Source of the DNA: Takakia lepidozioides
Lineage: Eukaryota > Plantae > Bryophyta
Direction of reading: 5' to 3'
NCBI GenBank assembly: GCA_030704615.1
Contig: CM060733.1
Span: 11,780,001 to 11,844,000 of the forward strand
DNA length: 64,000 bases
Part shown: in pieces, positions 3,441-58,900 of the stretch
Position numbering within the stretch: the first letter of the stretch is position 1
Layout: every line of letters begins with the position of its first letter
Made by a program: the position numbers and the translations under genes
Notes under the pieces: generated by a model
Seen by the model: only the letters and a program-made list of their open reading frames with translations
The model's database searches: none
Told to the model about the DNA's origin: nothing

Positions 3441-6400
3441 TTCATCAGGTCAAAGGTCACATTTGTCATAGGTCATTTTTAAATAATAATAATAATAAAG
3501 GGATTTTTTCTGAGCAACTCATGAAATGAAAAATAATACATTATGATACTAAAATTATTTGGCATGCGACCCAGTTATGGTTGGGTGCACATGGGATTCA
3601 GAGCACTCTTGTAAGCTCGAAAAATCAAACAACCCAAACAAATTTAAGAAAACAAATTCAATGTTCAAAATTGCAGATCTACTAAAGAAGCTGAGTAAGT
3701 AGTAGTAAGTCACTAGTGAAGCTAAGGAACTAGCAACTTACTTTCTAGCAAGGGCGGGCGTGGGTACAGCCATAAATGAGGGGTACTGATTAGAGCGGAA
3801 TTAAGGAAATTAGCATCTGATCAAGAGCCCTGTACTTAGTGCTCTGACTGACTGGGCGCATGGCAGTGATGCCTTTTGGATAACAATTGCAGGTACTCTT
3901 ATGTTGCCTGCAGTCTGTAGCATTCAATGACACTTCGCTTTGTAAGCCTCTGTCAGTGCATGAATCACATTGTTTATTGGTCCTTTTATAACCAACTGTT
4001 ACATGTTGAGAGGTAGTGAACTTGAAGCAGCAGCACTGTTGTGTAATGGCCTTGATACGATTCAAAAGAATACAAAACATTTTTAGAGCTTGAGTTGTAG
4101 TTAGGTCCTGCAATGATGATGTTGGTGTTGATGGTGGAAGGTATACAGAAAATTCACAATATGATTTGTCCTTTCATGATGTTTTTCTTTTGATGCAAAG
4201 TGGGAATATCTGTTTCCACAAACTTTTTTCGTATGTGGGTTCCCAATAATTGTCCTCATATTTTTGAAGTGAGAGAGAGAGAGAGCTTGCCTCATGTGGG
4301 TCCTTCTGCCTTGCACTGACGAAGTGTTAGAAGGGATCTACAAATAAATCAGTACTACGCCACTGCCACCTTAGGCCGGTCAAACCCATGCAGATAAAAT
4401 ATCAATCCTAGCAAAATATCTGCATCTATTTTAGACAAGAGCACGGTGCCAGGATGCTTGTTTCCGAATCATGAAATGTTGTTGGTTGCAAGTAACCAGA
4501 ATATAATATAAATGACTAGATGAGATAAGCAAGGGGATGGATGGCTCCAGACTTTGGCTGTTTCTGTAGACTTTTTGGCACTTCACTGTACTTGTGCAAA
4601 TCTCTCTTGGCTTTTGTGCATTTGAAACTCCATTTGAAATGCAAACATTGAGATGATAAGGCCTAGATGGGCAGGTTGTGTATAACTTGAGTCTTGGACC
4701 AGCATCTTAATAAATCTCCACTCTTCAACCGTACAAGTTTCCTCTTTGATTCAGCTTTTCCCAAAACAAAATGCAGCAATCATTTGAATTTGGCCGATCT
4801 ATTCTCCGCCTTTTCCTGTGAGCAAGTCACAATGCCGCGATGATCTAGTTGAAGTACCCTGACCCACTCAAAAGTGAGCAGGACGACTGCAGACTCAAGG
4901 GGGTAGGACAAATATCATCATTCTTCACGTCCCTCTAGGTAGCTCTAGCCCTGTGCATGCAACTATATGTGACCGCACGTATCGTATACGCACCCAGCAT
5001 TCACAACCACAACCAATCCAAAAGTTATCAACCTATAACACTGATCTGCAAAGCTTCAGATTCCGCCCAGACTTTTTTCTTCTTCTCTTGTTTGGCTGCA
5101 TTCACCATTCACAAACACAATAGAGCCCACCCCTGAAAGGAGGCAGTACCCGCAACGGAACGAGGCTCTTATTTACTCTAACTTCAGCTGGCGTCTCTCT
5201 CTCTCTCTCTCTTTTGGGTTGCTCTTGGCCTGTTTTTTGACTCTGGTTTTGTCTCCTCTCAAGTTTTTTCCATTCTGTCCCATAAGCTCTTTGAGCTTTC
5301 CGCTCTCTTTATAAGCTCTTATAAAGCACCATTTCATTTAATTTCTCTCTCTCTCCAAGAAGCCCCCCGATACTGAATGGGTGAGCGAGCTGGGAAACAA
5401 TTCGGAACCACAGAGCAACAAGTCCGAAAGCTATAACAACCCGGACGTTATAAAGTACCATTTCATTCATTTCTCTCTCTCCACAAACACAGCAACAAGT
5501 CCGAAAGCTATCATAACAAGGGATACAGAGCTTGGGATTTCGTGAAGGGTTATAGGTTCGTATACTTACTTATGGTTGCGTGATTATGTGTTTTTCAAAG
5601 GGTAGTAGTTGTGGGTGATCCGGGTCCTGCAAACACTTGAGTAGAAGAGAAAGGGAAGGAAAGGACGAGGGACGGAGTGAGGGACCACCGTCAGTTGCGC
5701 CATCGTGGTCCACGTGCCGGCCGAGGGCCTGGTTGCCGAAAGCAAAGGGGATGGTGGTTGCTCTCAGATTTCGTGCAGTATTTTAAATTCTGGCTTCACA
5801 CTCCTGTCTGAGCGATTCTTAGATTCACTGTACGTGGCACTGCACTGCACAGCAGATGCCAAGATTTAACCGAACCAAGTGTTGTATTGATATGCATCGC
5901 GTTGCTCTGTCGTCGTTTGCATGTCTCGGGTAGGTTCACCGATTTGGGCTTTTTCGTCAAGTGATCTTATGTTCAGAACCTTGACTGTCGATAGAGAAGA
6001 AACGAAAAGTTTAGAAAGGGCAGGAGGGGCCGGCTAACAAAACAAAGAGACCTGAAATGAAATGGCGGAAAGCTGTGCGATAAGAGAAAGATATGAAATG
6101 AAATGATACGTTGTAACGTTCCGCGAGAGAGAGAGAGAGATTCAGAAGGGGTGATGCTTTCGCATTATATACATGATCTGGACCACCTTCAAACTGGGTG
6201 GAAGTCTGTTGATAGAAAGCAAAAACTTTGGGTCCACAAAACTGCGAGAGGGAGGCGACCTCATCAACCTCCAGGATGTTCCAGGAACAAACTCACACTT
6301 GAGCACTTGCCGTGTCGTGGGGCTGATGAAGGGCGGGAAAAACCTCTCAAGTATCGAAGCTCACGGAAAACTCGAAGTGCTAAAAGTATGAGATCCTCAC

Positions 6401-6458
6401 CTTCCACACCCACATGATTATTCTAGAGTGGAATGAATGAAGTTGAGTTGCATTTTGC

Positions 6459-7633
6459 TCACCCCCAGCGCCCCACTCTCGCGCTCTCATACTCGCTTTC
6501 GCTGAACTCCTCCCAGCGGTCATCCGTGTCAACAGGCTTCGTGCTTATCTTACTCCCCGTGAATTGAAAATTTCCATAGCTGCTCTTGAAGAGCCCTTCA
6601 ATTGTGTCGTGTTCAGAAAGTGGAAGTTACCTATGTTCACGTCACCTTCATAATCAAGTTGGATCTCACCTTCTCCGGTCTCACGACCTCGCCAAGTAAA
6701 AGGAATTTTTTCCGATGGGAAGGCGGAAGAGGAAATTGGAGGAGAAGAAGACGAGCGGAGTATGCCTTCCAAGATCCCCATGTCGAAGTTGGCGCAGAGA
6801 CGGAGAGAGGGGTTACCAGAGATCCTCTGAAAAAAGATGGACATCCTTTTGTCAGACATCCGGTACTCTCGGTCGATTCCATCGCAATCGATGCTCCACT
6901 CGCCCTTCACATCCCCAAACTTTCCTTTCCCGCTTGCCTCGCACTCCTGCCGCTGTTCCTGCACCTTCTGTCTTTTAGCGGCCCTCTTCTCTATCTCCCA
7001 CTGAGAACGCTCACTTTCAATCTCGCTCATACGCTTCAAAACTGCAGAGTGATCCCTGCCAACAATAATCCACCGAGCCCTATCGTGACCGGGAGCATCG
7101 GCGCTAACGGTGTGGAGGCCCATCTGCTCAGAAGCTTGGTGCACCTGCATGCGACCACCAATCTTCAGAACTAGAAGATTTTCCTGTTTCTCTCCAAAGA
7201 ATTTCTCTCGTAGGAAGCGCTCGGAATCAAACTCAGCCCGTGATTTGTCATCCAAAGCAAGGTACCGCTTCTCCCTTGCACATGCATTCTCAAGCAAAAA
7301 CCTGCGGTTGAGTTCCAATTCCAGCTTGGCCAAGTCCTCAGGTGGGCCTTTTAGTGTTCCATCGGACAGAGCACTCTTCAGCCCCTCTGTTAGAGTCGCA
7401 ACTGTGGCTGTCGATTTCATCTCAAGCCCATAGAGCCGAAATTGGGCTTGCCACCAGTCTTTCTTTCGCTTCAGAGGTGTCGCGTTCTTGCGCTTGGGAA
7501 AGAGCCAGGCCTCCAGGTTGGCTATGGACTCCCGAGTGTGGCCCTTGTAACTCAGCCCTTCGCCATAGCATTCAAACGGTGGTGACTAGATCCTGCCGAT
7601 CACAATGGGCAGCCTCGCAGGCAGAGGATCCAT
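6459..7633 (-). pseudogene. Intronless gene or pseudogene for an uncharacterised fungal-type protein with an R3H-like motif
   Basis: ATG 7633 is in frame with ORF 7420-6545 but interrupted by TAG at 7588-7586. A frameshift near 6610 restores the C-terminus IEGLFKSSYGNFQFTGSKIS...WEEFSESEYESARVGRWG* (stop 6461-6459). Motifs: WWQAQFRLYGL, RMQVH..EQMGLHTVS, FTWRGRETGEGEIQL. Confidence 0.7.
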
Positions 7634-9360
7634 CTTCTCTTCCTCAATTTCTTCCTCTCAGTCTGAAAGATACACCACAGATCCACAACTGCGAATGCTC
7701 CCGCGCTCACGCAGCTTTGAAGCTGTTGGGCAGAGGCTTCATGCACAAGCTCCGATAGCAGCGCAGCCAAAGCCGGGTAGGGGTGACTGCGTTCCCACGT
7801 TCCCCGAAGTCAAGTTCCTTGAGAGGTATGGCAGCTCAGATTGTGGGCCTCTTGTACCATGAATTGTGCTTCAGTCTTACCTTACCAAGAAAAATGTATG
7901 CATTCCAATTGGATCATAGCTGTACAGGGCTAATTCATCCTGTAGTTGTGTCATGAAGCCACTGGGATTCAAGTATACGTCCTCTGAGAAAGCAGATGAG
8001 CAGGTGGGTAAGCAACACAGTACAAGAACCTGTAGAACTAAAAACGGGGCGAGCAATACCTGTATCTTTGCTCAAGTGACCTCGCCAATCCAAGGCGCTC
8101 TGCCCAAAAGGAGAGTGATGCTTGTGAATTGACAACCAAGTACCAAGAGTGCTACCTTATGACAGGGCACACAGAGCTCACCTGAAAGTAATCAAGGAAG
8201 TTACCTAGAGAAGCACTTGATCTTCCTTCAACACAACAACGACAGTGCTCGCACGATAGTCAGAAAGGCAAGCAGAGATAGAGGCATACAAACCTACACC
8301 TGTGGTTGGTGGTTGAAGTTGAACAGAATGATTTCAGCACTGAAATCACATAAGGATTTGCCCAGGTCTGTAGTCTGTACAAGAACACAGCGTTGTGCTT
8401 GAGCAGGCAGTCCAGTGGTTAGGTGTTCGTGCCTTGCCTGTGCATAACCAGGGTCCAATCTGCCTTCAACCATCCATTGGCCCCTTGCTGAGCAGCAGAC
8501 TCTGTAAATCCAATGTAAAATTAAACGAACTTCAGCTTTATCATAAAGGTAACTCAGAACTCTCTTGGCACGAGGCTTTGTCAGAATCTGGTGCGTGATA
8601 CAGTGTACTCTGTTGAGACCCAAGAAATTCAGCCACTCCAATGGGCAGAGGGTGACTGTCTACCTTAGTTAACCTGAACCCTGCCTTGACACTACTTGCA
8701 GGAAGCTGCAGAGTCGAAAATATTTAATGCAGAGCTGTAGCCAGGTAATTGTTATGGGCCTTCACCACAAATCTGTTCCCATGTCCAAAGACACTGGGAA
8801 ACACCTCTCAAAGCCACGCGGCCGCCCACAGTAATACCTCACAACCCCAAAATGTATGCCAATCAAGAACCAAAAGAGAAGCAAAATTGAGACTTTGTGT
8901 TTACAGTCCGAGAACCATACTTTATTACATCTCAAATAATCAGAACCTGACATTTATGCCACAGAGAGCTGCCAATGGAAAAGCCTGCCTCAAACCTTGA
9001 TCAATGATCGAGGCTCCACATTTTAGTGAAATCTGAGGCAAACAGTGAGGTGTAGCCTATGGAATGACATGATGTACATATCACCTACAGAACTGGCCTT
9101 CCTCGCAGACTACAAGCCTGGCACCAGTTCAGTGTTGAAGAACTTAACCAACCCATCCATCCACCTCAATCGCCACACCTCCTCTGGCTGGAGGCTGTAC
9201 TGGCATAGCCAACAAAAGGCTTTGAGAGATCAATCCAGTTGGCAATGAGTGAGTGACACAAAATTTGGTGCACAAGGCTTTTCCGGGGATCTCCAAGAAA
9301 GTGTCGGGTTTCCAAAACACGTGGTGGAGGCGTCAAGTGAAGATGGTTCCCGTATTTTCA

Positions 9361-12300
9361 TCAGCGTTCACTTCGTACAAGCTCTGGTCTCTGAAGCTCT
9401 GGGCAGGGCTGGGGTAACACAAAAGAGGATGAACCTGCTACTTCTGAGCAGTTCCAGCCAAGTAATCCTGACGTGATCTCAAGGGCTATATTATTCAGGA
9501 AAATGTCATGGAAGGGGGCCTCCTGCAAACCCAAAAGCTCGCCAGCCTGCATTATGTTTTCCCCCACTACATTGTTTATAGATATCCTTTCAACTACAGG
9601 GTAGGCACTTCGGTCCCAATTGTCGTCAGGGTGCTGCCCATACAATCCCGTAAAAACAATCGCCTTTTCCACATTTCGCATTACTATGTTTGATATTGAA
9701 ACGTTCACAATATAGCCTCCCCGGCCCACTGATGTTGACATCTTGATGCCTAACTTCGTGTCCAGAATGACCATGTCCTCTACCTGCACCACAGGGGTAA
9801 TTAGATTGATGATGCATAGTAGAGATAGTCTTAGTAAGATGGACAACTTCTGACACACCTCTTGGCTTGAACCGGAACCTTCAGTAGTCTGCCAATTCTA
9901 TGTATGTTGAATGAGCAAGTACATCACCTACTGCTTGCAGCAGTCAGTCATTAGTCACTTTTTGATTGATTAACCTAAGATTACATAATGAGTAGATACT
10001 GACCTTGACGCCTGAGACACCACCTGACATTTCACTGCCGATGGAGAATCCAGCACTGGTTGGAGACGATGCTATGACTCGTCGAATATGAACAAGAGAA
10101 CTCGACAAACCATATGCCATCCCATATTCATCCCACCCGCTTTTGATTGAGATTGCATCACCACCAGTAATGATGGAACAATCCTCAATACACACATCTG
10201 TGCAGGAATCTGCACCCACAAAGTAACGTGATTCTTATGAGGGCCTTTTTGGGGCTCTGATATAAAAACTTGCAAGTTAGACCACAATTTTGTGAGGAGT
10301 CATAAGCCATAATATTTCCCTACCTCTTCAGCCCACAAACTCACCAACAGATCTTTCAACACCAGACACAGGTAGCAAAAACATCTTGTGCAATTGAACA
10401 CATACGGTATTCTGCCATGAGTGTTATGAAAAAGACAGATTGATCAGGTCAGACTGTAACTTAAGCATACATTGACCCACCCCTACTTAGGTTGCAGCCT
10501 GTGGACAGTCGTAGGACAGCATGATCTCTCTCTCTTTCTAGGCTACGGCAAACCATGTCTTATGAGTACATCCTCTCTTTCTCTCTCATACTCATACCAC
10601 CGTCGACAGCCCCTGACAAAGGTAGTTTCTGGCCCTTTGTGTTCCGCTCAAACTGAGCACGGGGTCAATGGCCACAGCTACGGCAAACAACGTCTTATGA
10701 GTACAATCTGTGCATGATTTGAAAGGGCACCTGGATCAATGCCATCGGTGTCAGGCGAGTCGATAGGGGCACGGATGGTAATATTTCTTATCGCCACATT
10801 GCTGGGGACACACCCAAAAAACAACGTAGACCGATCAGCAAAACAGTTTACATGAACCAAGTAAACCCCTGACAGGAATACAGGCAAGCCGAGGTGGACA
10901 GCATACAATACCGACAACAAAAGTGAAGAAAAAACATGAGTGCCAGGGAGCTTGGATGTAAAGTAGTGTATTCAATTGTACGTCAAGAGTGTAAATATAG
11001 TCTAGAACTGTTCAAGAGACAACGAGAGTGCATTAAGATATCAATGATAAGTACTATGTTGCAGGGATTGCATGCATGTGAGTGTGAGAGACTGTGCACC
11101 CATCGGCAGTTCCCTACAAACCTTGCCTGTAAGCTATGCTTGAAGCATAGTTCTGCTGGTTACTCAGGAAAGAAAGACAGAAAGAGAGATAGAAATGACT
11201 ACCTGCAATAGACAGGATGTATGCTCCAAGATGGTGGGTTGAGAAAGTTGAGGTTTGAAATCAGAATCCTGTTCGAATTGGCAATCTCCACCAAATAGCC
11301 GCGACTGTAGTCCAATGTCTGATTGCGAGCCATTTCCCACCATATGGATCCCTGGCCGTCGATTGTTCCATTGTCACCTGTGGAGGCAGGGCAACAGAAG
11401 GCAAAACTGAGCCCCATCCATACAGCAGCCCACCGCAAAATTGCCAAGTGTGTTAGTTGCTGTCATCCATGTCAGATGGAATTCCTCCTCTAACAAGATA
11501 GATAAGATTATCCCAGACGTCTGTTGAATGATTTTCAAAATGAAAAGAGCCAACATTTTTGGCAGTCCAAAGCTTTTCAAAACACTCCATTTTTCTGAAG
11601 GTAGAGAATCATCCACAAATTACAGAAAAAAACTTCCAATCACTAATAAATCATTCTTACAGAGATGCCCTTCTGAACAGCTCACACTTTCAGCCTGGCA
11701 GCGGGACTGCTGAGCTCTGAGATCAGGGCAGTTAACTGGCACATGCAGGAGTCTAGAGTTGATGACAAGTTGAGAATTCCATCAAAAAGTCTCTAACATT
11801 ATTAGACATGGCTAACAGAATCCACCAACGATTCATTTCCCTTGGGTGGTTACAACAGCCAGCAACACCCTACAGCAGAACATGTGCGACCAGTTAACCA
11901 ATTAGAAAACTACTGAGTCCATTGATGCTCGATAAAAAATGGATCCTCTGTAGAAGTTCAGACTTATCAAGTATGTCATGACGTTCATGGAGGACGTTCT
12001 GCAGCATACAAGCTAAAAAATATCCTATAGCCATGGATTTCCAACTGCATAAGTGGAGGCCTGTACAGGGAGCATGACTCATTCTACCTGTGGACACTGA
12101 AAGAGAGCAAAACCTTGTTTTCCTCCTAAACACTACAGCTGTATCACCACTTTGCTGGTACCAAGTTTTTGATCCAGGAATAAAGTCAACCCAAACTTTT
12201 GTAAAAGCCTTACGACAAACCTGAGTAATTGCCACTGTGAACTAGGCACCCTCCACCGTTTACCTTCACACTGTGGTTAAGGCCTTAAATTACAGACCTG

Positions 12301-20445: not shown

Positions 20446-22026
20446 TTATGTCCTTCTGTTAAAGAATCTTCCCCCTTTCTGACCCACTCCTGTGCCTGCA
20501 AGACCAGCAGCCAAAAGAGACTTGGCATCCGGCCTCCAGAGCAATTCCTTCATTGTTAGAAAGCGGCCAGAAAGAGCAGGACTCATCTCTGAATCCCTAA
20601 TGTTGCCACAAAAGGTCACTCGCAATCTCTGCAGATCCTTGCAAGCCTGTACCACCTGATCCAATCCAGCAGTGGTGACCAGAGAGCAACCTGCTAATCC
20701 TAGCAGCTTAATTCGCTTGCAACTAGCGGCAAGACCGAAGGTTAGGTCGTCCAATCCCCAACAATCCTGAAACTCGAGCTCCCTCACAAAAACGCATACA
20801 GTCAGCAACGCTGCAAAGCCTGCCCGGTCCCGGAGATCACAACGCACGAGTTGTAGACGTTCAATAGCCTTACAACGGCCCAAGTGCTGTGCTGGCCCAG
20901 GGTTTCGATCAATCTGCTTGCACCCTTCGAGGCGTAAGGTCTTCAAACAAGTCAAAAATGATATCGCTGCAACCCAACCCTCGTAGAAACCCTTGTTTGA
21001 GAGGGTTAACTCTTCCAACATTACACAACACTTTCCTATAGCAGAAATTCCTTCATAACTAGCTTCGCATCCGCTCAGTTCTAAGCTGACCAATCTGCGA
21101 AATGTGCGGCTCATAATTGTGAGACCAATATCAGTAAAGGTGCAGTGATAGAAGCCTGTCACAGATCCCATCAATCTCACAATCTGCAAATTCTCACATG
21201 CAGAAACCGCTCTTAAAGTCTCATCTGTGCACTGAAAGAGTTCCAACTCCTGAAGCATAGGACAATTCGTGGCTATCCTTGCAATCCCTGTCTCTGACCC
21301 GGACTTTTTCTTGACGAATTGCTCCCCTCCAGTCCAACTAATCACCGTATCTGTCGCGCCCTTCAAGGGAGGACTATAACCAGATAAAGACTCTGCTTTT
21401 GTATCCGTTTGGAAAATGAAATCACCACCGACATCCTTCTCCCCGTTTCCATCTTTCTCCCCCTTGCTGTCTTTCTCAATGCCATTTGGCACAGATTCCT
21501 GAGCAACCTCCCTTGCAATGGAGCCATCCCTGCCCAAGTAAGTTTCTCTTCTGACGTCGACTACACACAGTCTTTGCAGTCCGGGGCAGGTATCGGCCAA
21601 AACCTTGAGGCCATTGTCCAGCTTGGCGGGAGAAAGCTGTTGCTCCTCTATACAATGCTCGATTGAACAAGGATCCACTGCATCACAACTAAGCTGGACA
21701 GTGAGGCCCTGATGAGTGAGAAGAATAGCAGAACCCCTTTGCTGGCGGGAGGTGGAAATACATGCCCGCGTGAGGTCCACATCCGTCAAGTTGGGAAACC
21801 TTGCAGTCATGCGTCCACTCTCCAGAAACCTCCATTCCTGGACCTTTATCGAGAGCTTCAAAAGGCCATGTAGTTTCATCCAACGCTTACAAACGAGAGA
21901 ATAATGCGGTGAGGGAGGTAAGAGCTTCAAAATCCTCACTAAAAGTTCGTCATTCCAGCTGCTAGTCAAGTCCCCGCTGGTGGTTTTCCAAAAGTCTATC
22001 TTGTTTCCCAGGCCTTTGCTCCGCAT
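20446..22026 (-). CDS. F-box/LRR protein, At5g07670/At5g51380-like, intronless, 526 aa
   Basis: F-box (DELLVRILKLLP...SLVCKRW), then FLESGRMTARFPNLTDVDL, LELSGCE.SYEGI.AIG.CC.MLEELTL, and the family-typical C-terminus WRPD.KS.L...L.GTG.G.KGG.FF. First ATG at 22026. Confidence 0.9.
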   Translation of the reverse strand: MRSKGLGNKIDFWKTTSGDLTSSWNDELLVRILKLLPPSPHYSLVCKRWMKLHGLLKLSIKVQEWRFLESGRMTARFPNLTDVDLTRACISTSRQQRGSAILLTHQGLTVQLSCDAVDPCSIEHCIEEQQLSPAKLDNGLKVLADTCPGLQRLCVVDVRRETYLGRDGSIAREVAQESVPNGIEKDSKGEKDGNGEKDVGGDFIFQTDTKAESLSGYSPPLKGATDTVISWTGGEQFVKKKSGSETGIARIATNCPMLQELELFQCTDETLRAVSACENLQIVRLMGSVTGFYHCTFTDIGLTIMSRTFRRLVSLELSGCEASYEGISAIGKCCVMLEELTLSNKGFYEGWVAAISFLTCLKTLRLEGCKQIDRNPGPAQHLGRCKAIERLQLVRCDLRDRAGFAALLTVCVFVRELEFQDCWGLDDLTFGLAASCKRIKLLGLAGCSLVTTAGLDQVVQACKDLQRLRVTFCGNIRDSEMSPALSGRFLTMKELLWRPDAKSLLAAGLAGTGVGQKGGRFFNRRT

Positions 22027-22143
22027 AGTTGCAAAGTTCAAAACCCTGTGCTTGATCCTCCTCACGCGAATCTGAACATGTACCCTCTGTCTCCTTTCCT
22101 CCTCACACTAATTAATCTAAATACCTATCTCCGTCCCCTCTTC

Positions 22144-22439: not shown

Positions 22440-25400
22440 CAAATACGCTAAAGTGCAGCATTGTGCTCATAGAGAGAGGACCACTCGAAACAACTTAGCC
22501 CTGTCCGAGAGACTTCCAAAAAATGTCTAAGCCTGTAGATGAGATTACCGAGGAACTAATCTACAGCTACGCTTTAACGGAAATTTAGCCTGGAAGTAAT
22601 GGCGGGGTGCTTGACGTGTTTCCAGTTCACGTCTCTCTCAAATTCCGGCGAGGCCGTGGAGTGGAGCTCTGAGGTCTCTCCAGCGCTGAGGGGGGAGAGC
22701 GTTCCAAACACAGTGTTCCTACTCGTCGCTTTGACAAATGATGCCATGGCAGGCCCACGTCGCTCTGAATGTGGCATGGATTGTTGGCGCCTGCCCGGGG
22801 TCCTGTGACAATCTGCAACACATTTTGCCCAAGCTTTTTTCGACTCCGTTAAAAGGTCTTTGTACACCATCACCAACAAAGTGGAGGTACTGATTATCTC
22901 CTTGCTAAACATCTAGCACGCCATAAGTGCCATAACGTAGATGCGCGAAGAGTCTCAAAGACCGGACGTGGAAAGGATCGGGCCATGGTTGTTTTGTTGT
23001 AAATAAGTAGCAGATCCATAGGGCCAATGGCCGAGAGGCTCCAATGTCTGTAGAAGACTTGATCAAGAGCCAGATTTTGGCTGGCGCTGTACAGGCAAGA
23101 AGGCAGTGCTCATGAGTTTCAATGATACCCGAAGAGCAGCATCTACACAATAAAGCTTCATGGAATTGCAACCATCTCCCACTTTTAGGGCTCTGTTCGC
23201 TACTTGCCATAAAAGTGCCGAGGTCTTGGCAGGCCTAATGTTTAGCCAGATAGAAGACCAGATTGCTGACCAGTTCTCATTCAAGAATCCAAAGTGACTC
23301 CATTTGCTATTCCACTTAGTGGAGAGGGATGGCTGGATGTTAAGAGCCCTATAAGCCTTCTTGGGGGTGAAGGTAAGAAGGGGTGTTGCAGTGCGGCCGA
23401 AGGCCCATTCCCATTTTTTGGGTCCAACTGGAGGTCCGCCAGAGGTCTTCCCAGGATCCACACAAATGTGGAGGCATTAACCCAAGACAGGACAGGTACG
23501 ATAAGAGGTGGTTGGGGATCAAACTCTTTGAACTTAGATGACCAATTGCATATTCTCACCGGGGTATGATTGAAACGAGGGAAGAGGGTTTGGGATTGAG
23601 AAACCAAGATTAGAACTAGAGTTTCGGGGTTGATATGGTAAGGGAACTCTGAGAAGTGGGTGTCTGTGGCAACAATCACGAATAGGATGGTGAGTCTGTT
23701 GCTTATGACTCCCAATGTCTAGAAGGTCCCGCCTGTAGAGACACGGTCCAAGTTTGAGGTATAGAATTTATGACCGTTTGAAGCCCGGCCTTGGCTCTGA
23801 TTGACCCCAGTATAGGGCTAATTGTGTCAATATGCAGGAAGCCTGCAGGCGACCACAGGTGTTTTAGTTGACTGATGCCCCTGCTGTCCCAGACATACCA
23901 CTTTTTTGCCAGCGATTTTTCAGTTGGTGTGGGCACGTTGGTGTTCAAAAATAGGTGCTGGCAGAAGGGTTTCCTCGTAAGTTTCTGCTTTTCTTTGTGG
24001 AGAAATGGTCTCAGTGCAGCCCAAGCTTTCCAGATGACGTTCCATAGGGATGATCCCACCATTTTGTGCTTGAATCCTTGTGTGATCCAACGAATGGAGG
24101 GGTGCCATTTAGAGGTCTTAAGGCGGCTTGCCATCATCAGATTTCCTACCACCAAAAACTTCCACCAGCCTCCTTCTGGGCCTAAGAATCTTGGCAGCCA
24201 CTTCCCGAGGAGGGATGTGATTGGATCTCCGGGTCCAGAACCCCCAGTCCTCCCAGTTTTTTTGGCTGGCAGATCTGTCTCCAGGAGACCTGTGGCCTGA
24301 CCTTTTGGCCTACTTTGTTAAGCTCCCCATACAAAATTTCACAATAAAGCTTTGTATTCACATATTTGCCTTTTGGAAGGGCACCAGGATGCTACATAGA
24401 ACCATAGGCCAGCCGAGAAAATCTGGTTGGCCACAAGTGCCTGACTTGCACATGATTGAGAAGAACTTAGAACCCCAAAAAGTGAGGTTTCTTTGGATCT
24501 TGGATAGAATGGGTGCAAATTGTTGCTCATTGGTGATATCAAGCCCATAGGTGTACCCTAGCAACGTTGTCGTCTGGCTAGGTTGCAGCCATGAGAGGCC
24601 CAAGGCCTGGCCCCAAGAGGGCAACGTCCCAGAAGGGATTTTGATGTGTCTCCAGCGAGGATGGCACAAGTTTTGGTTCCAGTTGACCTTGAAACTAGAG
24701 GCGTCACAGAAGGCCTCCAAAGTTGTTGCAATTCTGTCCAAGTTGGTTTGGCTTGCTTGAAGCATAAGGAAAGTGTCATCTACATACATGGATTCCCTGA
24801 TGTAGGCAGGCTGGTTAGTTATTTAGTTAGTGATTCTAAGACCTAGAATCTGCCTGTCTGCTTGTAGCATGTATGCAAGCGTGTCGGCGACAATAATGAA
24901 GAGGAAATGAGCCAGGAGGCAGCCTTGACGGACAGATCGATATAGGTTGAATGGCTTTGACACCGAACCGTTGATGATTACCCTGCTGGTTGACCCATCA
25001 TTTGACAGAGTAGAATGGCCTTTCCTAATGGGCACCTTGGCCAAGATTGATTTGCCTCCCTCCTTTTGTCAATAGGTCGAAGTCTAGAAGGATTAGGGCA
25101 ATAGCCTGCTGGGTTTGAAGGGCGTACTGGGGAAGCTCTTGTGCAAGAAGAAGGTTATCCATGATGTATCTCCCCTTAATGAAGCCCAATTGGCTAGGTC
25201 TAATGATTGAAGGAAGAAGAGGTTGAAGACGTAGAGCCAGGCTTTTGGCTATAATCTTATATGCAACATTGAGGAGAGTTATGGGCCTGTAGTTGCTTAA
25301 GTCCGTCCTGTGTCCCTTTTTGAAAATCAGGGAGATGACTCCCTGTGACATGTTTCCCGACATTTGGTTCGCTTGGAAAATGTGGTTGGCCATGGCCCAA

Positions 25401-26700
25401 AAATCTAGCGAAATGTCAGGCCAAAACTTTTTGTAAAATTCCACAGGGACTCCATCCATCCCTGGACATTTCCCATCTTTCAGCTTGGATAGGGCCAGTT
25501 CAAGCTCCTCTTCCGAGAGAGGCCCTTCCAGTGCCTCGGCCACAGGTGGGGCAATGAGAAGTGGGGAGTGAGCCAGGCAAGCATTGAGTGTGGCTGTTGC
25601 TACAGGCCTGTCACTCTCAAAGAGGGTCTGAAAGTGGCTGGCAGCGAATGTAGCCATGGGTTTGGGGTCTGTGAATGACTGCCCCGAGGCCCGGTTAGCT
25701 AGTTTAGATATTGTCTGCCTTTCTCTACTCATCTGCTGACTGGCTGCCCCCACTGCTTTGAGCTTGGCCATGAACTTATCTGATGGGTTTTGGGAGACAG
25801 TCCCAGCATGAGACCAAGTTGTCTGCAAGCCTTGTGTGAACTCTGGGATGTGTAGCAGAGAGGCATTCATTTTGTAAAGACCCTTGCCCCTTGGGCGAGT
25901 GTTTGGATATCCAATGAAGCCTCAATGACGGCGTGATCAAAGCCGGGGTGGATGGGCTGTTGGGGCAGCCTCCGAGACCATTGGATACAGTCCAAGGAGG
26001 CCAAGAATCTGTCCAATCTAGCCATCTGGAGGTCCACGAGAGCTCTGTTGTTTGACCAAGTAAAGACTGGGCCAGAGGGGGGCATAGGCCGCCGATTTGC
26101 CACTTCTATTTCCACCAAATTGTGGTTGAGGGTGAGGGAGTGCCAGTGTTGTGTCTCTACCACGTCTGGGTTAAACTGTCCAAGACCCCGCCTGTCAGTA
26201 GGAGACTCAACCATATTGAAGTCCCCTGCCAACACCCCGAAATCTATGTCATGTTTCAGTTCCATATTGGTATTTATGGATCCCAGAGTTGTGCCCTCTC
26301 TGCTGGCGAGTTTGGAGCATAAATATTAATTAACCCCAGCCGGCCTCCTTTGGCTGGAAGGTCTATGGCACAGTACTGAACTCTGCCTGGAACCCATGAG
26401 CCTTCCGAGACTGTATATTGAAAGAAGGATGGGGAAACCAAGATGGCGGTGCCTCCTCTGGAACCTTCGGAAGTTGGTTTCTAGAAGGAGTTTGCCCGTG
26501 GCCAGAGATTATCTGAGAGAGAAGCAATTTTCCCTAAATCGAGTTTGTGTTCTTGTAGGAAGAGAATTGTTTCTTTTCGAAGGTAAGGGGATAGAAAACT
26601 CTTAACGTTAGCGTGCTTAGGGGAAGCACTATCCGCCCCAAGGCCCCTGATGTTCCAAGAGGCCATGTCAAAATTTGGAAAAATTTCCTGAGAAGTGCGT
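22440..26700 (-). mobile_element. L1/Tx1-clade LINE, ORF2 only (EN-RT-zf), frameshifted
   Basis: APE motifs SWNIRGL, FLQEHK, GDFN, RLDRF; RT motifs PGMDG, NYRPITLLN, VRQGC, YVDD; C-terminal C..C....ETHEHCLL.C. Boundaries approximate; no ORF1 upstream. Confidence 0.92.
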
Positions 26701-45840: not shown

Positions 45841-48800
45841 TCAACGCTTCTTCCGCTTTTGAGGTCGCCCTTCGAAAGCTGCAACCGCCTCGGATGCGTT
45901 TCCCATTTCTGAGGCACGCACCCAAGATGCCTCCACATGATGATAGCCCTTCCATTTGACGAGATACTCCGTTTCTCGGTTCTTGAACCTCCTCGACTTA
46001 AGTATTGCCTCCACCTCGTACTCAGGTTCATTTTCATGATCCAACAGCATAGGTGGCGGACGCAACACTTGATGCCGATTCGGACGCGCTTCATCTTTGA
46101 AGTAAGGCTTCAAAAGGAGACATGGAATACTGGGTGCACCTTGCTGTTTGCCGGCAGCTCCAATTCATACACATCCTCATTCATAACCTTCCGAATGCGA
46201 AAGGACCCGCATACGGAGGTACGAACTTCGGACTCACTTCCGGAGGTAGTCGGAAATTCTTGATGTTCAACCAGACCTCTGTGCCTGCCTCAAACTTCAC
46301 TTCCCTCCGCTTCCGATTCGCCTGCCTTTCATACCGTTTCCTAGCTTTGGCAATGTTGTACTTTGCGAGCTTCAACAAACGCTCGCGTTCTTCCAGTACC
46401 GCCGCTACTGCCGGTTCCTCAACGTCCTGGGCGGCCCAACTTGTCGGCACCAGAGGTGCTTTTCCATAGACCAATACGAAAGGGGAAACTCCCGTTGCGG
46501 AGTGTTCTGTGTTATTATAACAGAACTCTGCCGCGTCTAAGTGTTCCATCCAGTCTGATTGGTCTGCCGACACGTAATTCCGCAAGAATTGCTTCACTAC
46601 GGAATTCACTCTTTCCGTTTGGCCGTCCGTCGTAGGTCGGAAGGCGGTGCTCATCTTCAGCCTCGTCCCCATCTTCTTCCAAAGTGTCCTCCAAAATTTA
46701 CTCGTAAACTTTGGATCGCGATCCGAGACAATATCCTTCGGGACTCCATGACTCCATGATGCTTTAAGACGTGGGCGAAGTAAAGTCGCCCTGTCTCCTG
46801 CGCCGTTGCCGTCTCCTTGGTGGGGATGAAATGGCCCATTTTACTGAACCTATCCACCACCACCATGATTGCATCGAATCCTTTTGACAGCGGCATAGCA
46901 GTCATGAAATCCATCGAGACGCTTTCCCAAGTCCCCTCTGGAATCGGCAAGGGTTGTAACAGCCCCGCTTGCTTTTTGTACTCGCTCCGGTTTTGTTGGC
47001 ATGTGGTGCATGTCTTGACATACTCCTCTGCCTCCTCCCTCAGTTTGGGCCAGAAATACTCTTTCTTCAAGAGTGCCGCAGTGCGCTTGGCTCCGCCGTG
47101 GCCCGCAAGCGGGCTATCATGGCATTCTCTCAAGAGGCTATCTCTGATCCCTCCCTTTGGCACGTAGAGACGTTTTTGCTTATACCGGAGCAGTCCATTT
47201 TGCAAGTGGAACTGCGATTTAACCCCCATCCTCAAGTCCTGCATCACGGACTTCGCCAGCTCATCCTTCCGGCAAGCCTTCCGGATCTTCCTTTGGAGCG
47301 CCGTCTCGCCCTTGTACACCAACAAGAGCTGCTGCTTTCTACTTAAAGCATCGGCCACCACGTTGTCTCGTCCCGGTTTGTACTGGATATCCACGTCGAA
47401 CACCGCCAAAGTATCTTGCCACCTAAGTTGTTTTGGGGACAACTTGGGCTGCGTGGCAAAATACTTCACCGTGACATTGTCCGTGAACACCTTCACTGGG
47501 TTGGAACCAACATAGTGGCGCCAAAGCTCAAGACAGTGCACCACCGCCTTCATCTCTTTTTCGTGCGTCGGCCACCGTCGCTCCACTTCATTCAGTTTCT
47601 TACTTTCGTAAGCCACTGGACGTTCATCTTGCATAAGTACACCCCCAATCGCGAAGTCCGACGCATCTGTATGAATCTCAAATGGACGATCGAACTCCGG
47701 GATTTTCAAGACTGGAGCTTCCGCCATCCGCTGCTTCAATTCAGCAAAAGCTTGGCCACAAAATGTGTTCCATACCCAGACTTTGGATTTACACAGAAGG
47801 TCCGACAGCGGCCCCGCGATCTTGGCGAAATTTCTCACATACTTCCGGTAATAGGAGGCGAGTCCTAGGAAGGATCGCACTCCCGGGACCGAAGTCGGAG
47901 GCTCCCAGTCCAAGATCGCCCTCACCTTTCTGTCATCCATTTTGATCCCATCCTGTGTAATCACATGCCCCAAGAACTCCACTTTCGTGACCCCGAATTT
48001 GCATTTTGAAGCTTTGGCGTACAGCTTCCCTTCCCGCAACTTTTGGAACACCCTTTTGAGGTGCTCCAGGTGTTCCTCTTTTGTTTTCGAGTACACCAAG
48101 ATGTCGTCGATGTACACGATCACAAAGTCATCCAACCACTCCTGAAAAAGGCTGTTCATCAGCGTGCTAAAGGTCGCCGGTGCATTGGTGAGCCCAAAAG
48201 GCATCACCAAGAACTCATATGAACCATACCTTGTCCTGCACGCGGTCTTCTCCTCATCTCCTTCCGCCACCCGAATTTGATGATAGCCGAGCGCAAGTCG
48301 ATCCGGCTGAAATACTTCGCTCCTGCCAACCGGTCGAAAAGGTCGTCGATCCTTGGCAAAGGGTACCGGTTTTTAATAGTCACCTTATTCAAAGCCCTGT
48401 AATCGACACACATCCGCAGCGTCCCATCTTTCTTGTCTGCGAATAGCACCGGGGCTCCGTAAGGTGACTTACTCGGCCGGATGTACCCCTTTGACATTAG
48501 ATCCTTGAGCTGAGTCTTCAGCTCGACCAACTCTCTGTGGCTCAACCGGTAGGGCGCCTTGGCAGGCGGTTCCGATCCCGGTATCACCTCAATCTTGTGG
48601 TCAACTCCTCTTCGCGGTGGCAAGCCGCTTGGTAAATCCTCCGGCATCACATCCTGGTATTTCTCCAAAATCCCCTTGATCCAATCTGGGCTCGGCTCCC
48701 CATCGCCTTCTCCTTTCACTTCTCTAATGTAAAGCAAAAACTGGGACTCGTGTGCCTCCTCCACGGCCCACTCCTTTGCTGACAAAAGGTTTATTCGCCC

Positions 48801-50406
48801 TCCCACGGATTTGGGCGTTTCCGACACTCGTAAAACCTCGCCACCATTCCCACATGGCAGCGTGACTACTCTCTTGCGGCCATCTATGACCGCTCCGGAT
48901 TTGCTCAAAAAGGTCATCCCCAAAATGAGATCCACTCCATCGATCTCGCAGATAGTGAAGTTCTCACGTCCCTCCCAACTCCCCAGTTGAAGAGGAACAT
49001 CAAACGCCAACCTTGTCGCCAACTGAGGTTCTCCTTTGGCAGAGCGCACCTCAATAGAGGCCCCCACGTCACTTGTCGGGAGTCCCAACTTTCACGCCGC
49101 CGCCGGCGTCATGAAGGAGTGCGACGCTCCTGTGTCCACCAACAACGACAAGTTAGTTCCGGATATTATCCCATCCACGAACAATAACTGACTCCCTTTA
49201 CGCAGGGCGCCAGTTTCCTGATACAACTCACAAGAATAGTTGCCTACCTTGCAAGTCCTGGCGACCACCACTTCCACCAAGCGACTGATTGTATCTTCCG
49301 ACAGCTCCGTGGTTGCCCGAGTCATGTTCAATTGTCGAGGTTTTGTGCACTTCTTGGCTATGTGCCCGGGCTCCCCGCAATTGAAACACACTCCATCAAA
49401 GTTGCCTTCTGTCCGCCATAAGCCGCTCCACCCGCTTTTCCTTTCGAAGCACCGGGTGCCGCCTTGACGTGTGAAGGCCATCCCTTCGATTTCCACGTGC
49501 CATTATCGCCGCGTGGCCTATCCCACTTCTTTTCCGGTCGGAAGGAGTCACCTTCCCGCCGGGTCTTCTTGTGGTTCAGCTCCGTACGGCCTTGTCTCTC
49601 ACCCCTAGGGACATCCGAGAAACATTCAGCCCTCTCAATTGCCTCGTTCAAAGTCTTGGGTGGCTTCTCCTCCAACTTCCGCCTGGCCCATGGGGCCAGT
49701 CCCGCCACAAAGTTGAAGACCATTTCTGGTTCTGCCATGTCCGCGACTTCGAGCAACAGCACATTGAAAGCCTGGACATACCCCCGAATGTCATCTGTTT
49801 GCTTCAAATTCCTCATCTTGTCCCGGGCAAGCCAGGACGCGTTAAGGGGCACAAACTGTCTCTTCATCAATTCCTTAAACCCACTCCAGTTCAAGGTTTC
49901 CGGACTTGGACCTCGGTCGTGAAGGCGTTTCTGCCACCATTGTTGAGCATAGCCCCTCAAATAGGTGGGAGCCACTTCCACCCGATCCTCGTCACTCAAC
50001 TTGGCCGCCCGGAAGTACTGCTCTAGCTCCAAGAGCCAGGTGTTGAGTGCCTTCCGATTTCGGACGCCCTCGAAGGTGCCGGGTTCCTTAGGCTTCACCT
50101 TAAACTTTGCCTTAGCGGAAGTGGCATTAGCCGCCTTCAACACGTCTTTCAACGTCCCGCCAAACTGCGCCAACAACCCTTCCAAAAGGCTGCCGGCATG
50201 GGAGGCATCTCTTGGTTTGTCGGAGCTCTGAAGGATTCCTCGGGCTCCGACTCCTCGGATTCCTCCCGCTCTTGGGCGGCCTCGTTTTCGGAAACATGAA
50301 TCGCTTCCTCAAACGGCCGCCTCGGTGACACGCCGCCCCCATCGGGCTCACCGGGATCATCATCTTTTGGGCCGTTCCGCTTTCGCTTCGGCTTGCCCGA
50401 CCCCAT
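45841..50406 (-). pseudogene. gag-pol of element A (Gag, CCHC knuckle, protease, RT, RNase H, integrase, chromodomain)
   Basis: CFNCGEPGHIAKKC; LLVDTGASHSF; YRALNK, YIDDILVYS; TDASDFAIG; H..H..C..C; TDGQTERVN; GPF; EYEVEAIL...EYLVKWKGY...SW. Five frameshifts and one stop. Confidence 0.95.
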
Positions 50407-55904: not shown

Positions 55905-58900
55905 ATGGTGCATGAGCCACGCATGCGATTACGAGATGACAGACTATGGTGACTCGAGGAGGCGTACGCCATATCAAATGGGAACAAGAAAATGCTTTGC
56001 AATTGCACTGAATGTCATGGATCCAAATTGCAGTTGTTGGAGACAGTGAGGAAGCACTACCTCAAACATAAGAGGGATCCAACTTTGCGCAGCTGTACTA
56101 TTCCGGTACATCCACAGGAAGTACACTGTCCTTCAGGATTTAGCAATCTCCAAGTTTGAATTTTGAAACCATTTTGGTGTGGTAGTACCATAGTAGTAGC
56201 CATGACTTCACCACTCCACATGTCAAAAGTTGATTGACGAGCTGTAGTCATGTAGTTGTGTCTATGACTGCCCCTTTATACACATGTCGATATGTCGTTG
56301 GCTAGTTGTAGTCGTGTAGTCATAAACACATATAGGAACACGACTACGTCACTAGAACTATCTGCCTTGTGTCACAAAGTCGTTGCTCAAATCGAAGTGA
56401 TGAAGTGATAGCCGTGACTACATTTGTCCACATGTCATAATCTGTATATACTATGAATGAACCGTGGGAAACACGGGATGCAGGGACATGCTGATTCTGA
56501 TGACGAGGAGAATCGAGCTGAGTTTGGGCTGGTGCCTAATCAGAGGGAGAACAATACGGATCATGAAGGTGGTGTGGAGACAGAAATTCAACGAGCATTG
56601 CAGGAAGCTTTTGAGTTTGCGGATGCAAACAGAGAGGATCCCATTAATGATGGAACTCGGGCTGAAGACAGCCCCAACAACGAAGGATCCATGGACAATG
56701 CAGAGAATGCAGAAAATGGCCCAAACCTGGAGTCACGGAGTTGACCCCAATTATGATACGCTATTTCCACAATCTCAGTGTAAACTCTACGAAGGGAGCT
56801 CGATCAGCCGATTTGAAGCTACTTTGCACTTGCTCAACTTGTGCACCACCCACAAGTGCACCAATGGCTTTGTGGATGAGCTTCTTGGATTGTTGCGCAA
56901 AAGTTTTTTGCCGAAACAGAATTCTCTGCCAAAAACTATGAAGCTAGAACTATGATTGCGAAGATGGGATTGCAGTACACCTAGATCCATGCCTGCGAGA
57001 AAGGTTGTGTACTCTTCTGTGGGGAGAATGAAAAAGCATATTTTTGCCCGGAGTGCAAGATGTCGCGTTACATTCCTGGTCGTGGGACTGTACCCGGAAA
57101 AATACTACGATATTTCCCTGTCATCCCAAGGTTGAAACTCATATATCGATGCAAATCAATCGTGCACCTTATGACATGGCACTTCAGACATAAGAGTCAG
57201 GATGGATTGGTTCGACATCCAGCTGATAGCAAAGCCTGGGCCCACGTTGACTCCACATTTGCGGATTTTGCTTCAGAACCACGAAATGTACGATTAGGAT
57301 TAGCCTTAGATGGAGTAAATCCATACAGTGCTCAATCCACGAGTTGGAGCACATGGCCCATCCTGTTGGTCAACTATAATTTGCCTCCATGGTTGATGAC
57401 AAAGAAGTTTTTCGTCATGTTAGCACTCCTTATCCCTGGAAAGGAGTCTGTTACATTTGCAAACATTGATGTGTATTTGATGCCCCTAGTAGAGGAGCTA
57501 CAGGAATTGTGGAGAGGCATCATAGCTTATGATGTTTCCCAAGCTCTCCAACAACGCCAATTCTTGCTACGGGCATTGCTGCTATGGTCAATCCATGATT
57601 ACCCTGCATATGGCTTGCTCATAGGTCAGGTTACTAAAGGTTATGCTGGTTGTCCAACCTGTGGACCCGAGGTGGATCCACAGCATTTACATGCATGTTC
57701 GAAGACTATGTTCCTGGGCCATCGGAGATTTCTTGCCCACAACCATATGTATAGAAGATCAAGATTGTTCAATGGTGCTATTGAGCATAGAGTGGCTCCA
57801 CAAACACAGACGGGAACACAAATAAATGAACGTGTAATTGACCTGATTGCATGGATAGCAACACGGGGGAAACCAGATACGCCATCAAACCCTTCCAAAT
57901 CTCACGGAGTGAAGCGATTATCAATCTTATATGCCTTGTCTTACTGGGAGGGCCTCCTCATACGACATACGTTTGATGCTATGCATTGCGAGAAGAACTT
58001 TGCAGATAATATCATTAAGACAATTTTTGGGGAGAAAGATACATTGAAGGTTTGGCGTGATCTTGAATTACTTGGGCTGCGTCCATCATTGTGGTTGCAA
58101 CGACATCCAGACAGGGCAAGTACGTTAATCATGCCTCTTGCTCCTTATGTTCTGACTGAAGCTGAGTTGAAAGTTTTCTTGGACACTGTGCGAAACCAAA
58201 GTACCCACAGGATATGCATCAGCTTTCAAAAAACATGTGGTAAAGAAAAAACTATCTGGCATGAAATCACATGATTACCATGTGTTCATGCACCAAATTT
58301 TACCGTTGGCTATTTGTGGGCTCATGGCAACAGGTGTGCGCACTACGATTTTGCGAGTATGTCGTGTATTTAGGAGGTTGTGTGCAAAAGTAGTGAATCC
58401 TGCAGAGTATGAGGAGTTGAAACATGAAGCAATTATTACTCTCTGTCTAATGGAGAAAGAGCTCCCACCATCATTCTTTGATGTGATGACATATCTGTTT
58501 GTCCACCTAGGGGACGAGCTCGATTTATGTGGTCCTGTGGCTTCACGTTGGATGTACCCCATGGAGCGGGCAATGAAAGAAATTAAGAGGTACGTCCGGA
58601 ACATGGCAAAACCCGAGGGCAGCATGGCTCAAGGATACATTTTTTATGAAGCTCTAGGATTTTGCACGGAGTATATGGTAGGATACGATGGAACCGCATG
58701 AAGGGTGTGGGATACAGATGAGGAAGAATCTGTGGCCGGCGTAGTTTTGGAAGGAGGCGGCAAACCTTGGAAATTGGGTGACTTGCATGCTATTGTACAC
58801 GATTACATCATTCAAAATCATCAAGCCTATCCGATATGTTGAAGTAAGTCCTCACCCTTTCAGATCTGAATATTTTGTTGATTTGATCTTTTTGTACTGC

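Follow-up and report, generated by a model that had tools for sequence, protein, structure and literature searches.

Intron-poor accessory genes of fungal derivation are well documented in bryophyte genomes, and a survey of horizontal gene transfer (HGT) reported 1,809 gene families of foreign origin in 49 streptophytes, with 90 events in the ancestral embryophyte (PMC12513842). The gene considered here resembles such families, and a part of its predicted product resembles the R3H domain (PF01424); literature searches turned up no paper on the family to which it belongs. The gene lies in a 64 kb window (the whole stretch of DNA that was analysed), and a preliminary description had read it as the record of a fungus-to-plant transfer into the present plant. 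We find that the locus is best described as an ordinary pseudogene in a little-known plant branch of a fungal-type gene family.

Results

A disrupted reading frame

The whole gene remnant occupies positions 6459-7633 on the minus strand and is intronless, with about 390 codons including a TGA stop at 6459-6461. When read from the ATG at 7633, it follows one frame that is broken by a single TAG at codon 16 (7586-7588, minus strand), in place of the first Ser of an SSPP motif; most moss homologues carry the first S of 'ISSPP' at this aligned position. The second lesion is a one-base frameshift (6592-6596, minus strand), a deficit of one base at about 6593 in a GGGC context. It falls right after TQLKG, and the conserved reading resumes in another frame (LFKSSYGNFQFTG...RWG), in which the last 44 codons, including the RWEEFSESEYESARVGRWG motif, run to the TGA. 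The program-made list of open reading frames (ORFs) holds a 291-aa ORF at 6545-7420 (minus strand).

A tblastn comparison of 18 homologues with the window covered 7633-6462 in two collinear pieces, with the switch of frame at 6593-6602, and detected no second copy of the gene within the 64 kb. Across the frameshift site, blastn against a Sphagnum-like locus aligned 347 nt with 346 nt. Both lesions fall in columns that are conserved coding sequence in the 18 homologues, and together the TAG and the frameshift, which precedes the last barrel strands, would block production of the full protein. Translation and tblastn thus confirmed the earlier account of an intronless gene of ~390 aa with a 291-aa ORF and a TAG at codon 16; the frameshift proposed at the same time is likewise real and of one base, but lies ~17 nt away from the position of ~6610 given for it.

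Apart from these lesions, the window copy is well preserved. The sequence motifs quoted in the preliminary description are all present on the minus strand, namely the N-terminal conserved motif WWQAQFRLYGL (7456-7424), which is helical in the modelled Sphagnum protein, RMQVH (7153-7139), followed by GLHTVS and RWIIVG, and FTWRGRETGEGEIQL (6700-6656), inside the C-terminal barrel region. With the family motifs WWxAQ, GLHxxS, WRGRETGEGEIQ and AYExARxxRW and end-to-end collinearity, the copy qualifies as a member of the family described below. All invariant or nearly invariant family columns are kept, including the Gly, Trp and Arg of the barrel, and since the terminal branch is also not longer than that of Sphagnum, the inactivation looks recent. 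An acidic disordered loop of ~45 residues, seen in the aligned moss and fern homologues, is missing at 6806-6823 (minus strand). Upstream, the TCTTTCAG that had been taken for a plant-like acceptor is indeed found at 7670-7663, 30 nt before the ATG, but a transcript-like contig that is collinear with the genome over 7540-7731 makes its acceptor role putative.

A fungal-type family with a plant branch

We queried databases with the separate reading-frame pieces; for alignment and trees only, the gene was read through with X at both breaks. The main piece retrieved 18 proteins, the best match having an E-value (1.3e-129 among 5.8 billion proteins) far beyond chance, and the remnant can be aligned over its whole length with intact proteins of 413-448 aa. 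Sphagnum proteins lead the matches as one cluster (57% identity, 430 aa); after them come two proteins of Ceratodon purpureus, one of Adiantum capillus-veneris (33%) and, distantly, one of Ilyonectria. None of the 18 matched proteins has a Pfam domain on record, and the family is without a Pfam model.

Among 1.84 billion cluster representatives searched with a profile, 1,846 clusters had E ≤0.001 and 302 had E ≤1e-30; the clusters are defined at 50% identity, and most matches carry no taxon. All named non-plant members are Dikarya (Ascomycota or Basidiomycota), among them Trapelia, Sclerotinia, Rhizodiscina, Xylona, Trichoderma, Chlorociboria, Ilyonectria, Gloeophyllum and Neolentinus, and the closest ESM Atlas clusters, whether by language-model features or by shape, are hypothetical proteins of Ascomycota. 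The family is therefore overwhelmingly fungal, in line with the fungal family proposed in the preliminary description. The named fungal proteins are at most ~28% identical to the window copy. Named plant members come from Sphagnum, Ceratodon, the liverwort Riccia sorocarpa and the fern Adiantum. A further word-index search with the alignment, limited to 8,000 candidates, contributed few names. We found no seed plant or alga among the named matches, nor in the plant clade of the best 150 of the 1,846 clusters, and no member from hornworts, lycophytes, animals or other eukaryotes among the named matches. The earlier view of the gene as foreign to plants thus stands insofar as no seed plant appeared, but not beyond that, given the intact genes of Sphagnum, Ceratodon, Riccia and Adiantum.

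The Sphagnum-like, Ceratodon and moss-like genes that were checked are intact and intronless, and two of three fungal genes checked (Trapelia and Gloeophyllum) are likewise intronless. Orthologues of other plants lie on contigs of 16-170 Mb overall, those of Ceratodon on chromosome-scale records and those of Sphagnum, Adiantum and Riccia on contigs of 30-170 Mb. Ceratodon has two intact paralogues, on CM026423.1 and on chromosome 11, and Sphagnum species carry several near-identical copies, indicating that the family has been duplicated and maintained in other mosses. No microsynteny was detected by tblastx of the window flanks against the Sphagnum-like and Ceratodon loci. Blastn of all fetched homologue loci against the window matched the gene itself and nothing else; thus no shared repeats tie these loci to the present genome. 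Gene neighbourhoods in Ilyonectria, Trapelia and Gloeophyllum were ordinary and gave no hint of function.

Two unrooted trees, one built with FastTree (157 rows) and one with IQ-TREE (67 rows, LG+C20+F+G4), agreed with each other. We treated 13 rows as plant, of which six are named (the window copy, Sphagnum, two Ceratodon, Riccia and Adiantum), and the remaining seven, which carry no taxon name, were assigned by their grouping in the first tree. In the IQ-TREE analysis the window copy falls within a clade of 11 bryophyte rows with support of 100/100. It branches close to the base of the moss sequences, with Sphagnum nearest, in a moss-like position; Adiantum and one sequence without a taxon name form a second clade (99). 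The end branch of the window copy (0.21) is not long, and its path to Sphagnum measures 0.63. Judged by this placement, the window copy is inherited vertically within bryophytes and was not obtained from a fungus by the present genome alone.

The 13 plant rows form one clade (UFBoot 88, SH-aLRT 38, 87% of bootstrap trees) in a tree that is unrooted and in which most tips are unnamed, and the branching inside it matches the species tree, with ferns outside and bryophytes together. This clade pairs, again without a root, with a 16-row subclade of Ascomycota that includes Xylona, Ilyonectria and Trichoderma (95/86). From the distribution and this tree, unrooted and with mostly unnamed tips, we infer that the plant lineage likely stems from one old fungal transfer, at the land-plant base or close to it. 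Because the tree is unrooted, plant monophyly is moderate (88/38) and 7 of the 13 plant rows are unnamed, the direction of transfer and its having been a single event both stay short of proof. Seed plants and some other groups would have lost the gene after such an ancient transfer.

Among the alternatives, the one that fares best involves no horizontal transfer at all, the family being an ancient eukaryotic one that descended vertically in fungi and plants and was lost from most other lineages. A root on the plant stem of the unrooted tree would make plants and fungi reciprocally monophyletic, and the position of ferns outside bryophytes would fit such a history as well. However, many independent losses would be needed (in algae, hornworts, lycophytes, seed plants, animals and other eukaryotes), and none of these lineages contributed a member among the named matches. 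The plant stem, at ~0.3-0.4, is also not longer than the branches between fungal subclades (0.4-0.7), the plant clade joins one particular subclade of Ascomycota, and the absence of introns is common to all plant copies checked and to two of the three fungal ones. We therefore regard purely vertical descent as unlikely.

Fold and putative function

An AlphaFold2 model of the Sphagnum orthologue, built on an alignment of 124 rows, reached a mean pLDDT of 91.3. It begins with short N-terminal hairpins and helices, continues with a beta-alpha-beta-beta-alpha unit (residues 155-200) and a long helix (197-234), and ends with an eight-stranded barrel (238-405) broken by the disordered acidic loop, followed by a C-terminal helix. 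The acidic loop is of low confidence in this model (pLDDT <60). Projected on the window (minus strand), the R3H-like core corresponds to 7040-7177, with R-x3-H at 7153-7139, as supported by a sub-threshold Pfam match and the fold of the model. The long charged helix joining this domain to the barrel corresponds, by the model helix 197-234 and the alignment, to 6923-7039, and accounts for the 'coiled coil' noted earlier. The eight-stranded beta-barrel and terminal helix correspond to 6462-6910, with the final strands and the helix displaced from the reading frame by the frameshift.

Several lines of evidence bear on the R3H-like domain. The Pfam R3H model (PF01424) scored 14.1 bits (E 0.048) and so did not reach its gathering threshold (26.8 bits); Pfam searches of both reading-frame pieces yielded nothing beyond this match. 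Across the family, 4 of 18 members had a PF01424 match of any kind (best E 0.018). The weak top match of the family profile among solved structures was the R3H domain of Smubp-2 (1msz, E 0.09-0.15); a single-sequence search of solved structures gave no match. When modelled alone, the middle unit of the Sphagnum orthologue reached a pLDDT of 94.7 and could be superposed on solved R3H domains. VIA-align returned 6 of 48,161 chains with Z ≥5, and three of these were R3H domains: Smubp-2 (Z 6.4, rmsd 2.0, 53 residues, 32% identity), SPAG7 (Z 6.2) and Fap1 (Z 5.7). The R3H proteins of the Jag/KhpB type scored lower (Z 4.0-4.2). With the same domain model, the four best Foldseek rows were all R3H, but at E 0.06-0.3; with the whole model Foldseek found no significant match, and a domain-wise search was needed.

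At the sequence level, the window copy has the R-x3-H followed by GL..S (RMQVH, GLHTVS), with both the Arg and the His, each of which is kept in 46 of 100 family members. The designation 'R3H-like' is thus supported for the predicted fold and for probable homology, and not for formal Pfam membership. To this extent the R3H consensus pointed out in the preliminary description holds, in that the modelled fold matches R3H domains and the R-x3-H...GL..S pattern is present, but the Pfam score stays below threshold. Judging from the fold, binding of single-stranded nucleic acid or of a nucleotide 5' phosphate through this domain is probable for intact members.

The barrel (238-405) matches small up-and-down barrels with Z 9-10.6, namely eight-stranded outer-membrane barrels, avidins and designed barrels, and Gid4 more weakly. 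As these matches define a common fold, they assign no function; on its shape, the barrel of intact members is probably a ligand- or partner-binding module.

We considered whether the locus might still be functional, either through a shorter protein started from an internal ATG (Met72, the 291-aa ORF at 7420-6545) or as a regulatory transcript. Patchy transcript-like contigs lie on the locus, the 291-aa ORF retains the R3H-like domain, and no additional stops have accumulated. However, this ORF is without 71 conserved N-terminal residues, and the final strands of the barrel, together with the invariant helix at the C-terminus, are replaced by 20 unrelated residues. Since no homologue has such an architecture, we give continued function only a slim chance.

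Read support and surroundings

Contigs were assembled from the reads of four public runs and compared over 5000-10500. In the probable source sample a single contig spans 5446-10500 with zero differences, at a depth of ~25 that equals the flank depth, and physically connects the gene remnant with the adjoining GH28 gene. The TAG was replicated without differences in the contig of an independent sample (7540-7731), and a plant-metagenome run contains an identical stretch at 7328-7570. Read coverage of the frameshift site comes solely from the run that is the probable source of the assembly.

These data bear on whether the remnant could be fungal contaminant DNA, or an intact gene in which misassembly or sequencing error mimics lesions. 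The frameshift does lie next to a short run of G, and its read support comes from the likely source run only. Against both possibilities, the source contig ties the gene at uniform depth to a spliced plant GH28 gene, the TAG recurs in an independent sample and the plant-metagenome run carries the identical stretch. As the source contig joins the two genes and a second sample has the TAG, contamination and misassembly are very unlikely. Two earlier proposals can be judged on the same evidence. The gene is integrated beside a plant polygalacturonase, which one contig of uniform depth now links to it, and of decay and mis-assembly, put forward earlier as alternatives, decay is supported, as the source contig is without differences and the TAG is found in a second sample.

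Two runs, made from other samples of this species, have the character of RNA and join 9781 to 10002. Small transcript-like contigs were obtained at 7540-7731 and 6122-6444 (run X5) and at 7271-7429 (run X6), which suggests weak, patchy transcription of the locus; as such contigs overlap both gene ends, it may still be transcribed.

The neighbouring GH28 polygalacturonase gene lies at 8900-10219 (minus strand). Its intron (9782-10001) is removed in the RNA-like contigs of two samples, its transcript reaches down to ~8900, and at 9175 an A>G difference is present in two other samples. A very high-copy repeat (5184-5551 and 6041-6116) follows closely downstream of the pseudogene, with a summed contig depth of ~72,000 against a baseline of 25. 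Many of its alternative joints skip ~140 nt, and it contains internal direct repeats as well as a partly inverted partner at 6041-6116; it resembles a MITE or satellite family. A high-copy element of ~50 nt (8398-8449), situated between the pseudogene and the GH28 gene, has a summed depth of ~5,400, and contigs of all four runs diverge on either side of it. We considered capture of the gene by a transposon and rejected it, as no repeats or terminal inverted repeats on both flanks suggest it.

Elsewhere in the window we noted ORFs of plant transposons. Those of Ty3/gypsy type (gag, RT, RNase H and integrase zinc-binding), together with a second RT fragment, lie at 46181-50185 and 25025-26265 (both minus strand). 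A 404-aa ORF at 57060-58274 (plus strand) matches Transposase_21 (tnp2, CACTA-type; E 1.6e-74). An uninterrupted 539-aa ORF at 20446-22065 (minus strand) has weak, sub-threshold matches to leucine-rich-repeat and FBD-associated F-box models.

Discussion

Taken jointly, the lesions, the homologues and the tree argue that the locus is probably a pseudogene, a recently disabled and vertically inherited copy of an ancient fungal-type plant family. The least probable of the alternatives is a recent, independent fungus-to-plant transfer into the present genome, now decaying, for which the lack of introns, the overwhelmingly fungal family and the lack of seed-plant homologues among the named matches would speak, but the closest relatives are those of Sphagnum (57%) and other mosses rather than a donor-type sequence, named fungi reach no more than ~28% identity, the window copy is nested in the bryophyte clade at 100/100, and orthologues lie on chromosomes of four other non-seed plants. 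The original proposal that the locus records a transfer into the present plant fails on the same nesting and on the intact orthologues elsewhere. Homologues are distributed vertically across non-seed land plants, which in part is the outcome that the preliminary description itself had named as contrary to its proposal.

These results correct the reading of a fresh cross-kingdom transfer, which was attractive but mistaken for the present locus. In annotation, the locus should be labelled a pseudogene and not a 291-aa protein. Beyond the locus itself, they document a large family without a Pfam model (~1,800 clusters at 50% identity, almost all fungal) and give it a confident predicted architecture, an R3H-like domain followed by an eight-stranded barrel, that may merit a domain description. 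The small plant branch is a further candidate among the fungal-type genes retained by non-seed plants, and the pseudogene shows that loss of such genes is still going on.

A broader scenario, which we put forward tentatively and consider rather doubtful as a whole, is that an unrecorded ancient fungus-to-embryophyte transfer introduced a putative nucleic-acid-binding protein with an R3H-like domain and a beta-barrel, and that only bryophytes and ferns kept the family. The locus would then show, in a moss-like lineage that branched early, the gene in the course of being lost, much as it was lost from seed plants.

Among known proteins, the closest are those of mosses (Sphagnum CAK9267683.1 and KAH9569660.1; Ceratodon KC19_3G172000 and KC19_11G032600), which are collinear over the full length at 40-57% identity and have motifs, domain order and lack of introns in common with the window copy. 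They differ in being intact, with 413-448 aa, whereas the window copy has a stop and a frameshift and no acidic loop. The hypothetical proteins of Dikarya (Ilyonectria, Trichoderma, Xylona, Trapelia, Sclerotinia, Gloeophyllum and Neolentinus) are related by profile, with E-values down to 1e-97, and share the architecture, down to the WRGRETGEGEIQ motif of the barrel and the AYExARxxRW helix at the C-terminus; in contrast to the moss proteins, they are ~23-33% identical to plant members, fall in separate clades and in some cases carry long inserts or extra regions.

With the R3H domains (PF01424), as solved for human Smubp-2/IGHMBP2 (1msz, 2lrr), SPAG7 (2cpm) and yeast Fap1 (7zw0), the family has in common the predicted beta-alpha-beta-beta-alpha fold and an R-x3-H that opens the first helix and precedes GL-x2-S. 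It departs from them in its sub-threshold Pfam score, in keeping the R and the H in under half of its members, and in partner domains, an N-terminal module and a beta-barrel, that are unlike those of any described R3H protein. Finally, the locus is similar to the bryophyte families of the HGT survey (PMC12513842) in having few or no introns, a bryophyte-centred accessory distribution, fungal relatives and a transposon-rich setting, but the present copy is a pseudogene and not a working acquisition.
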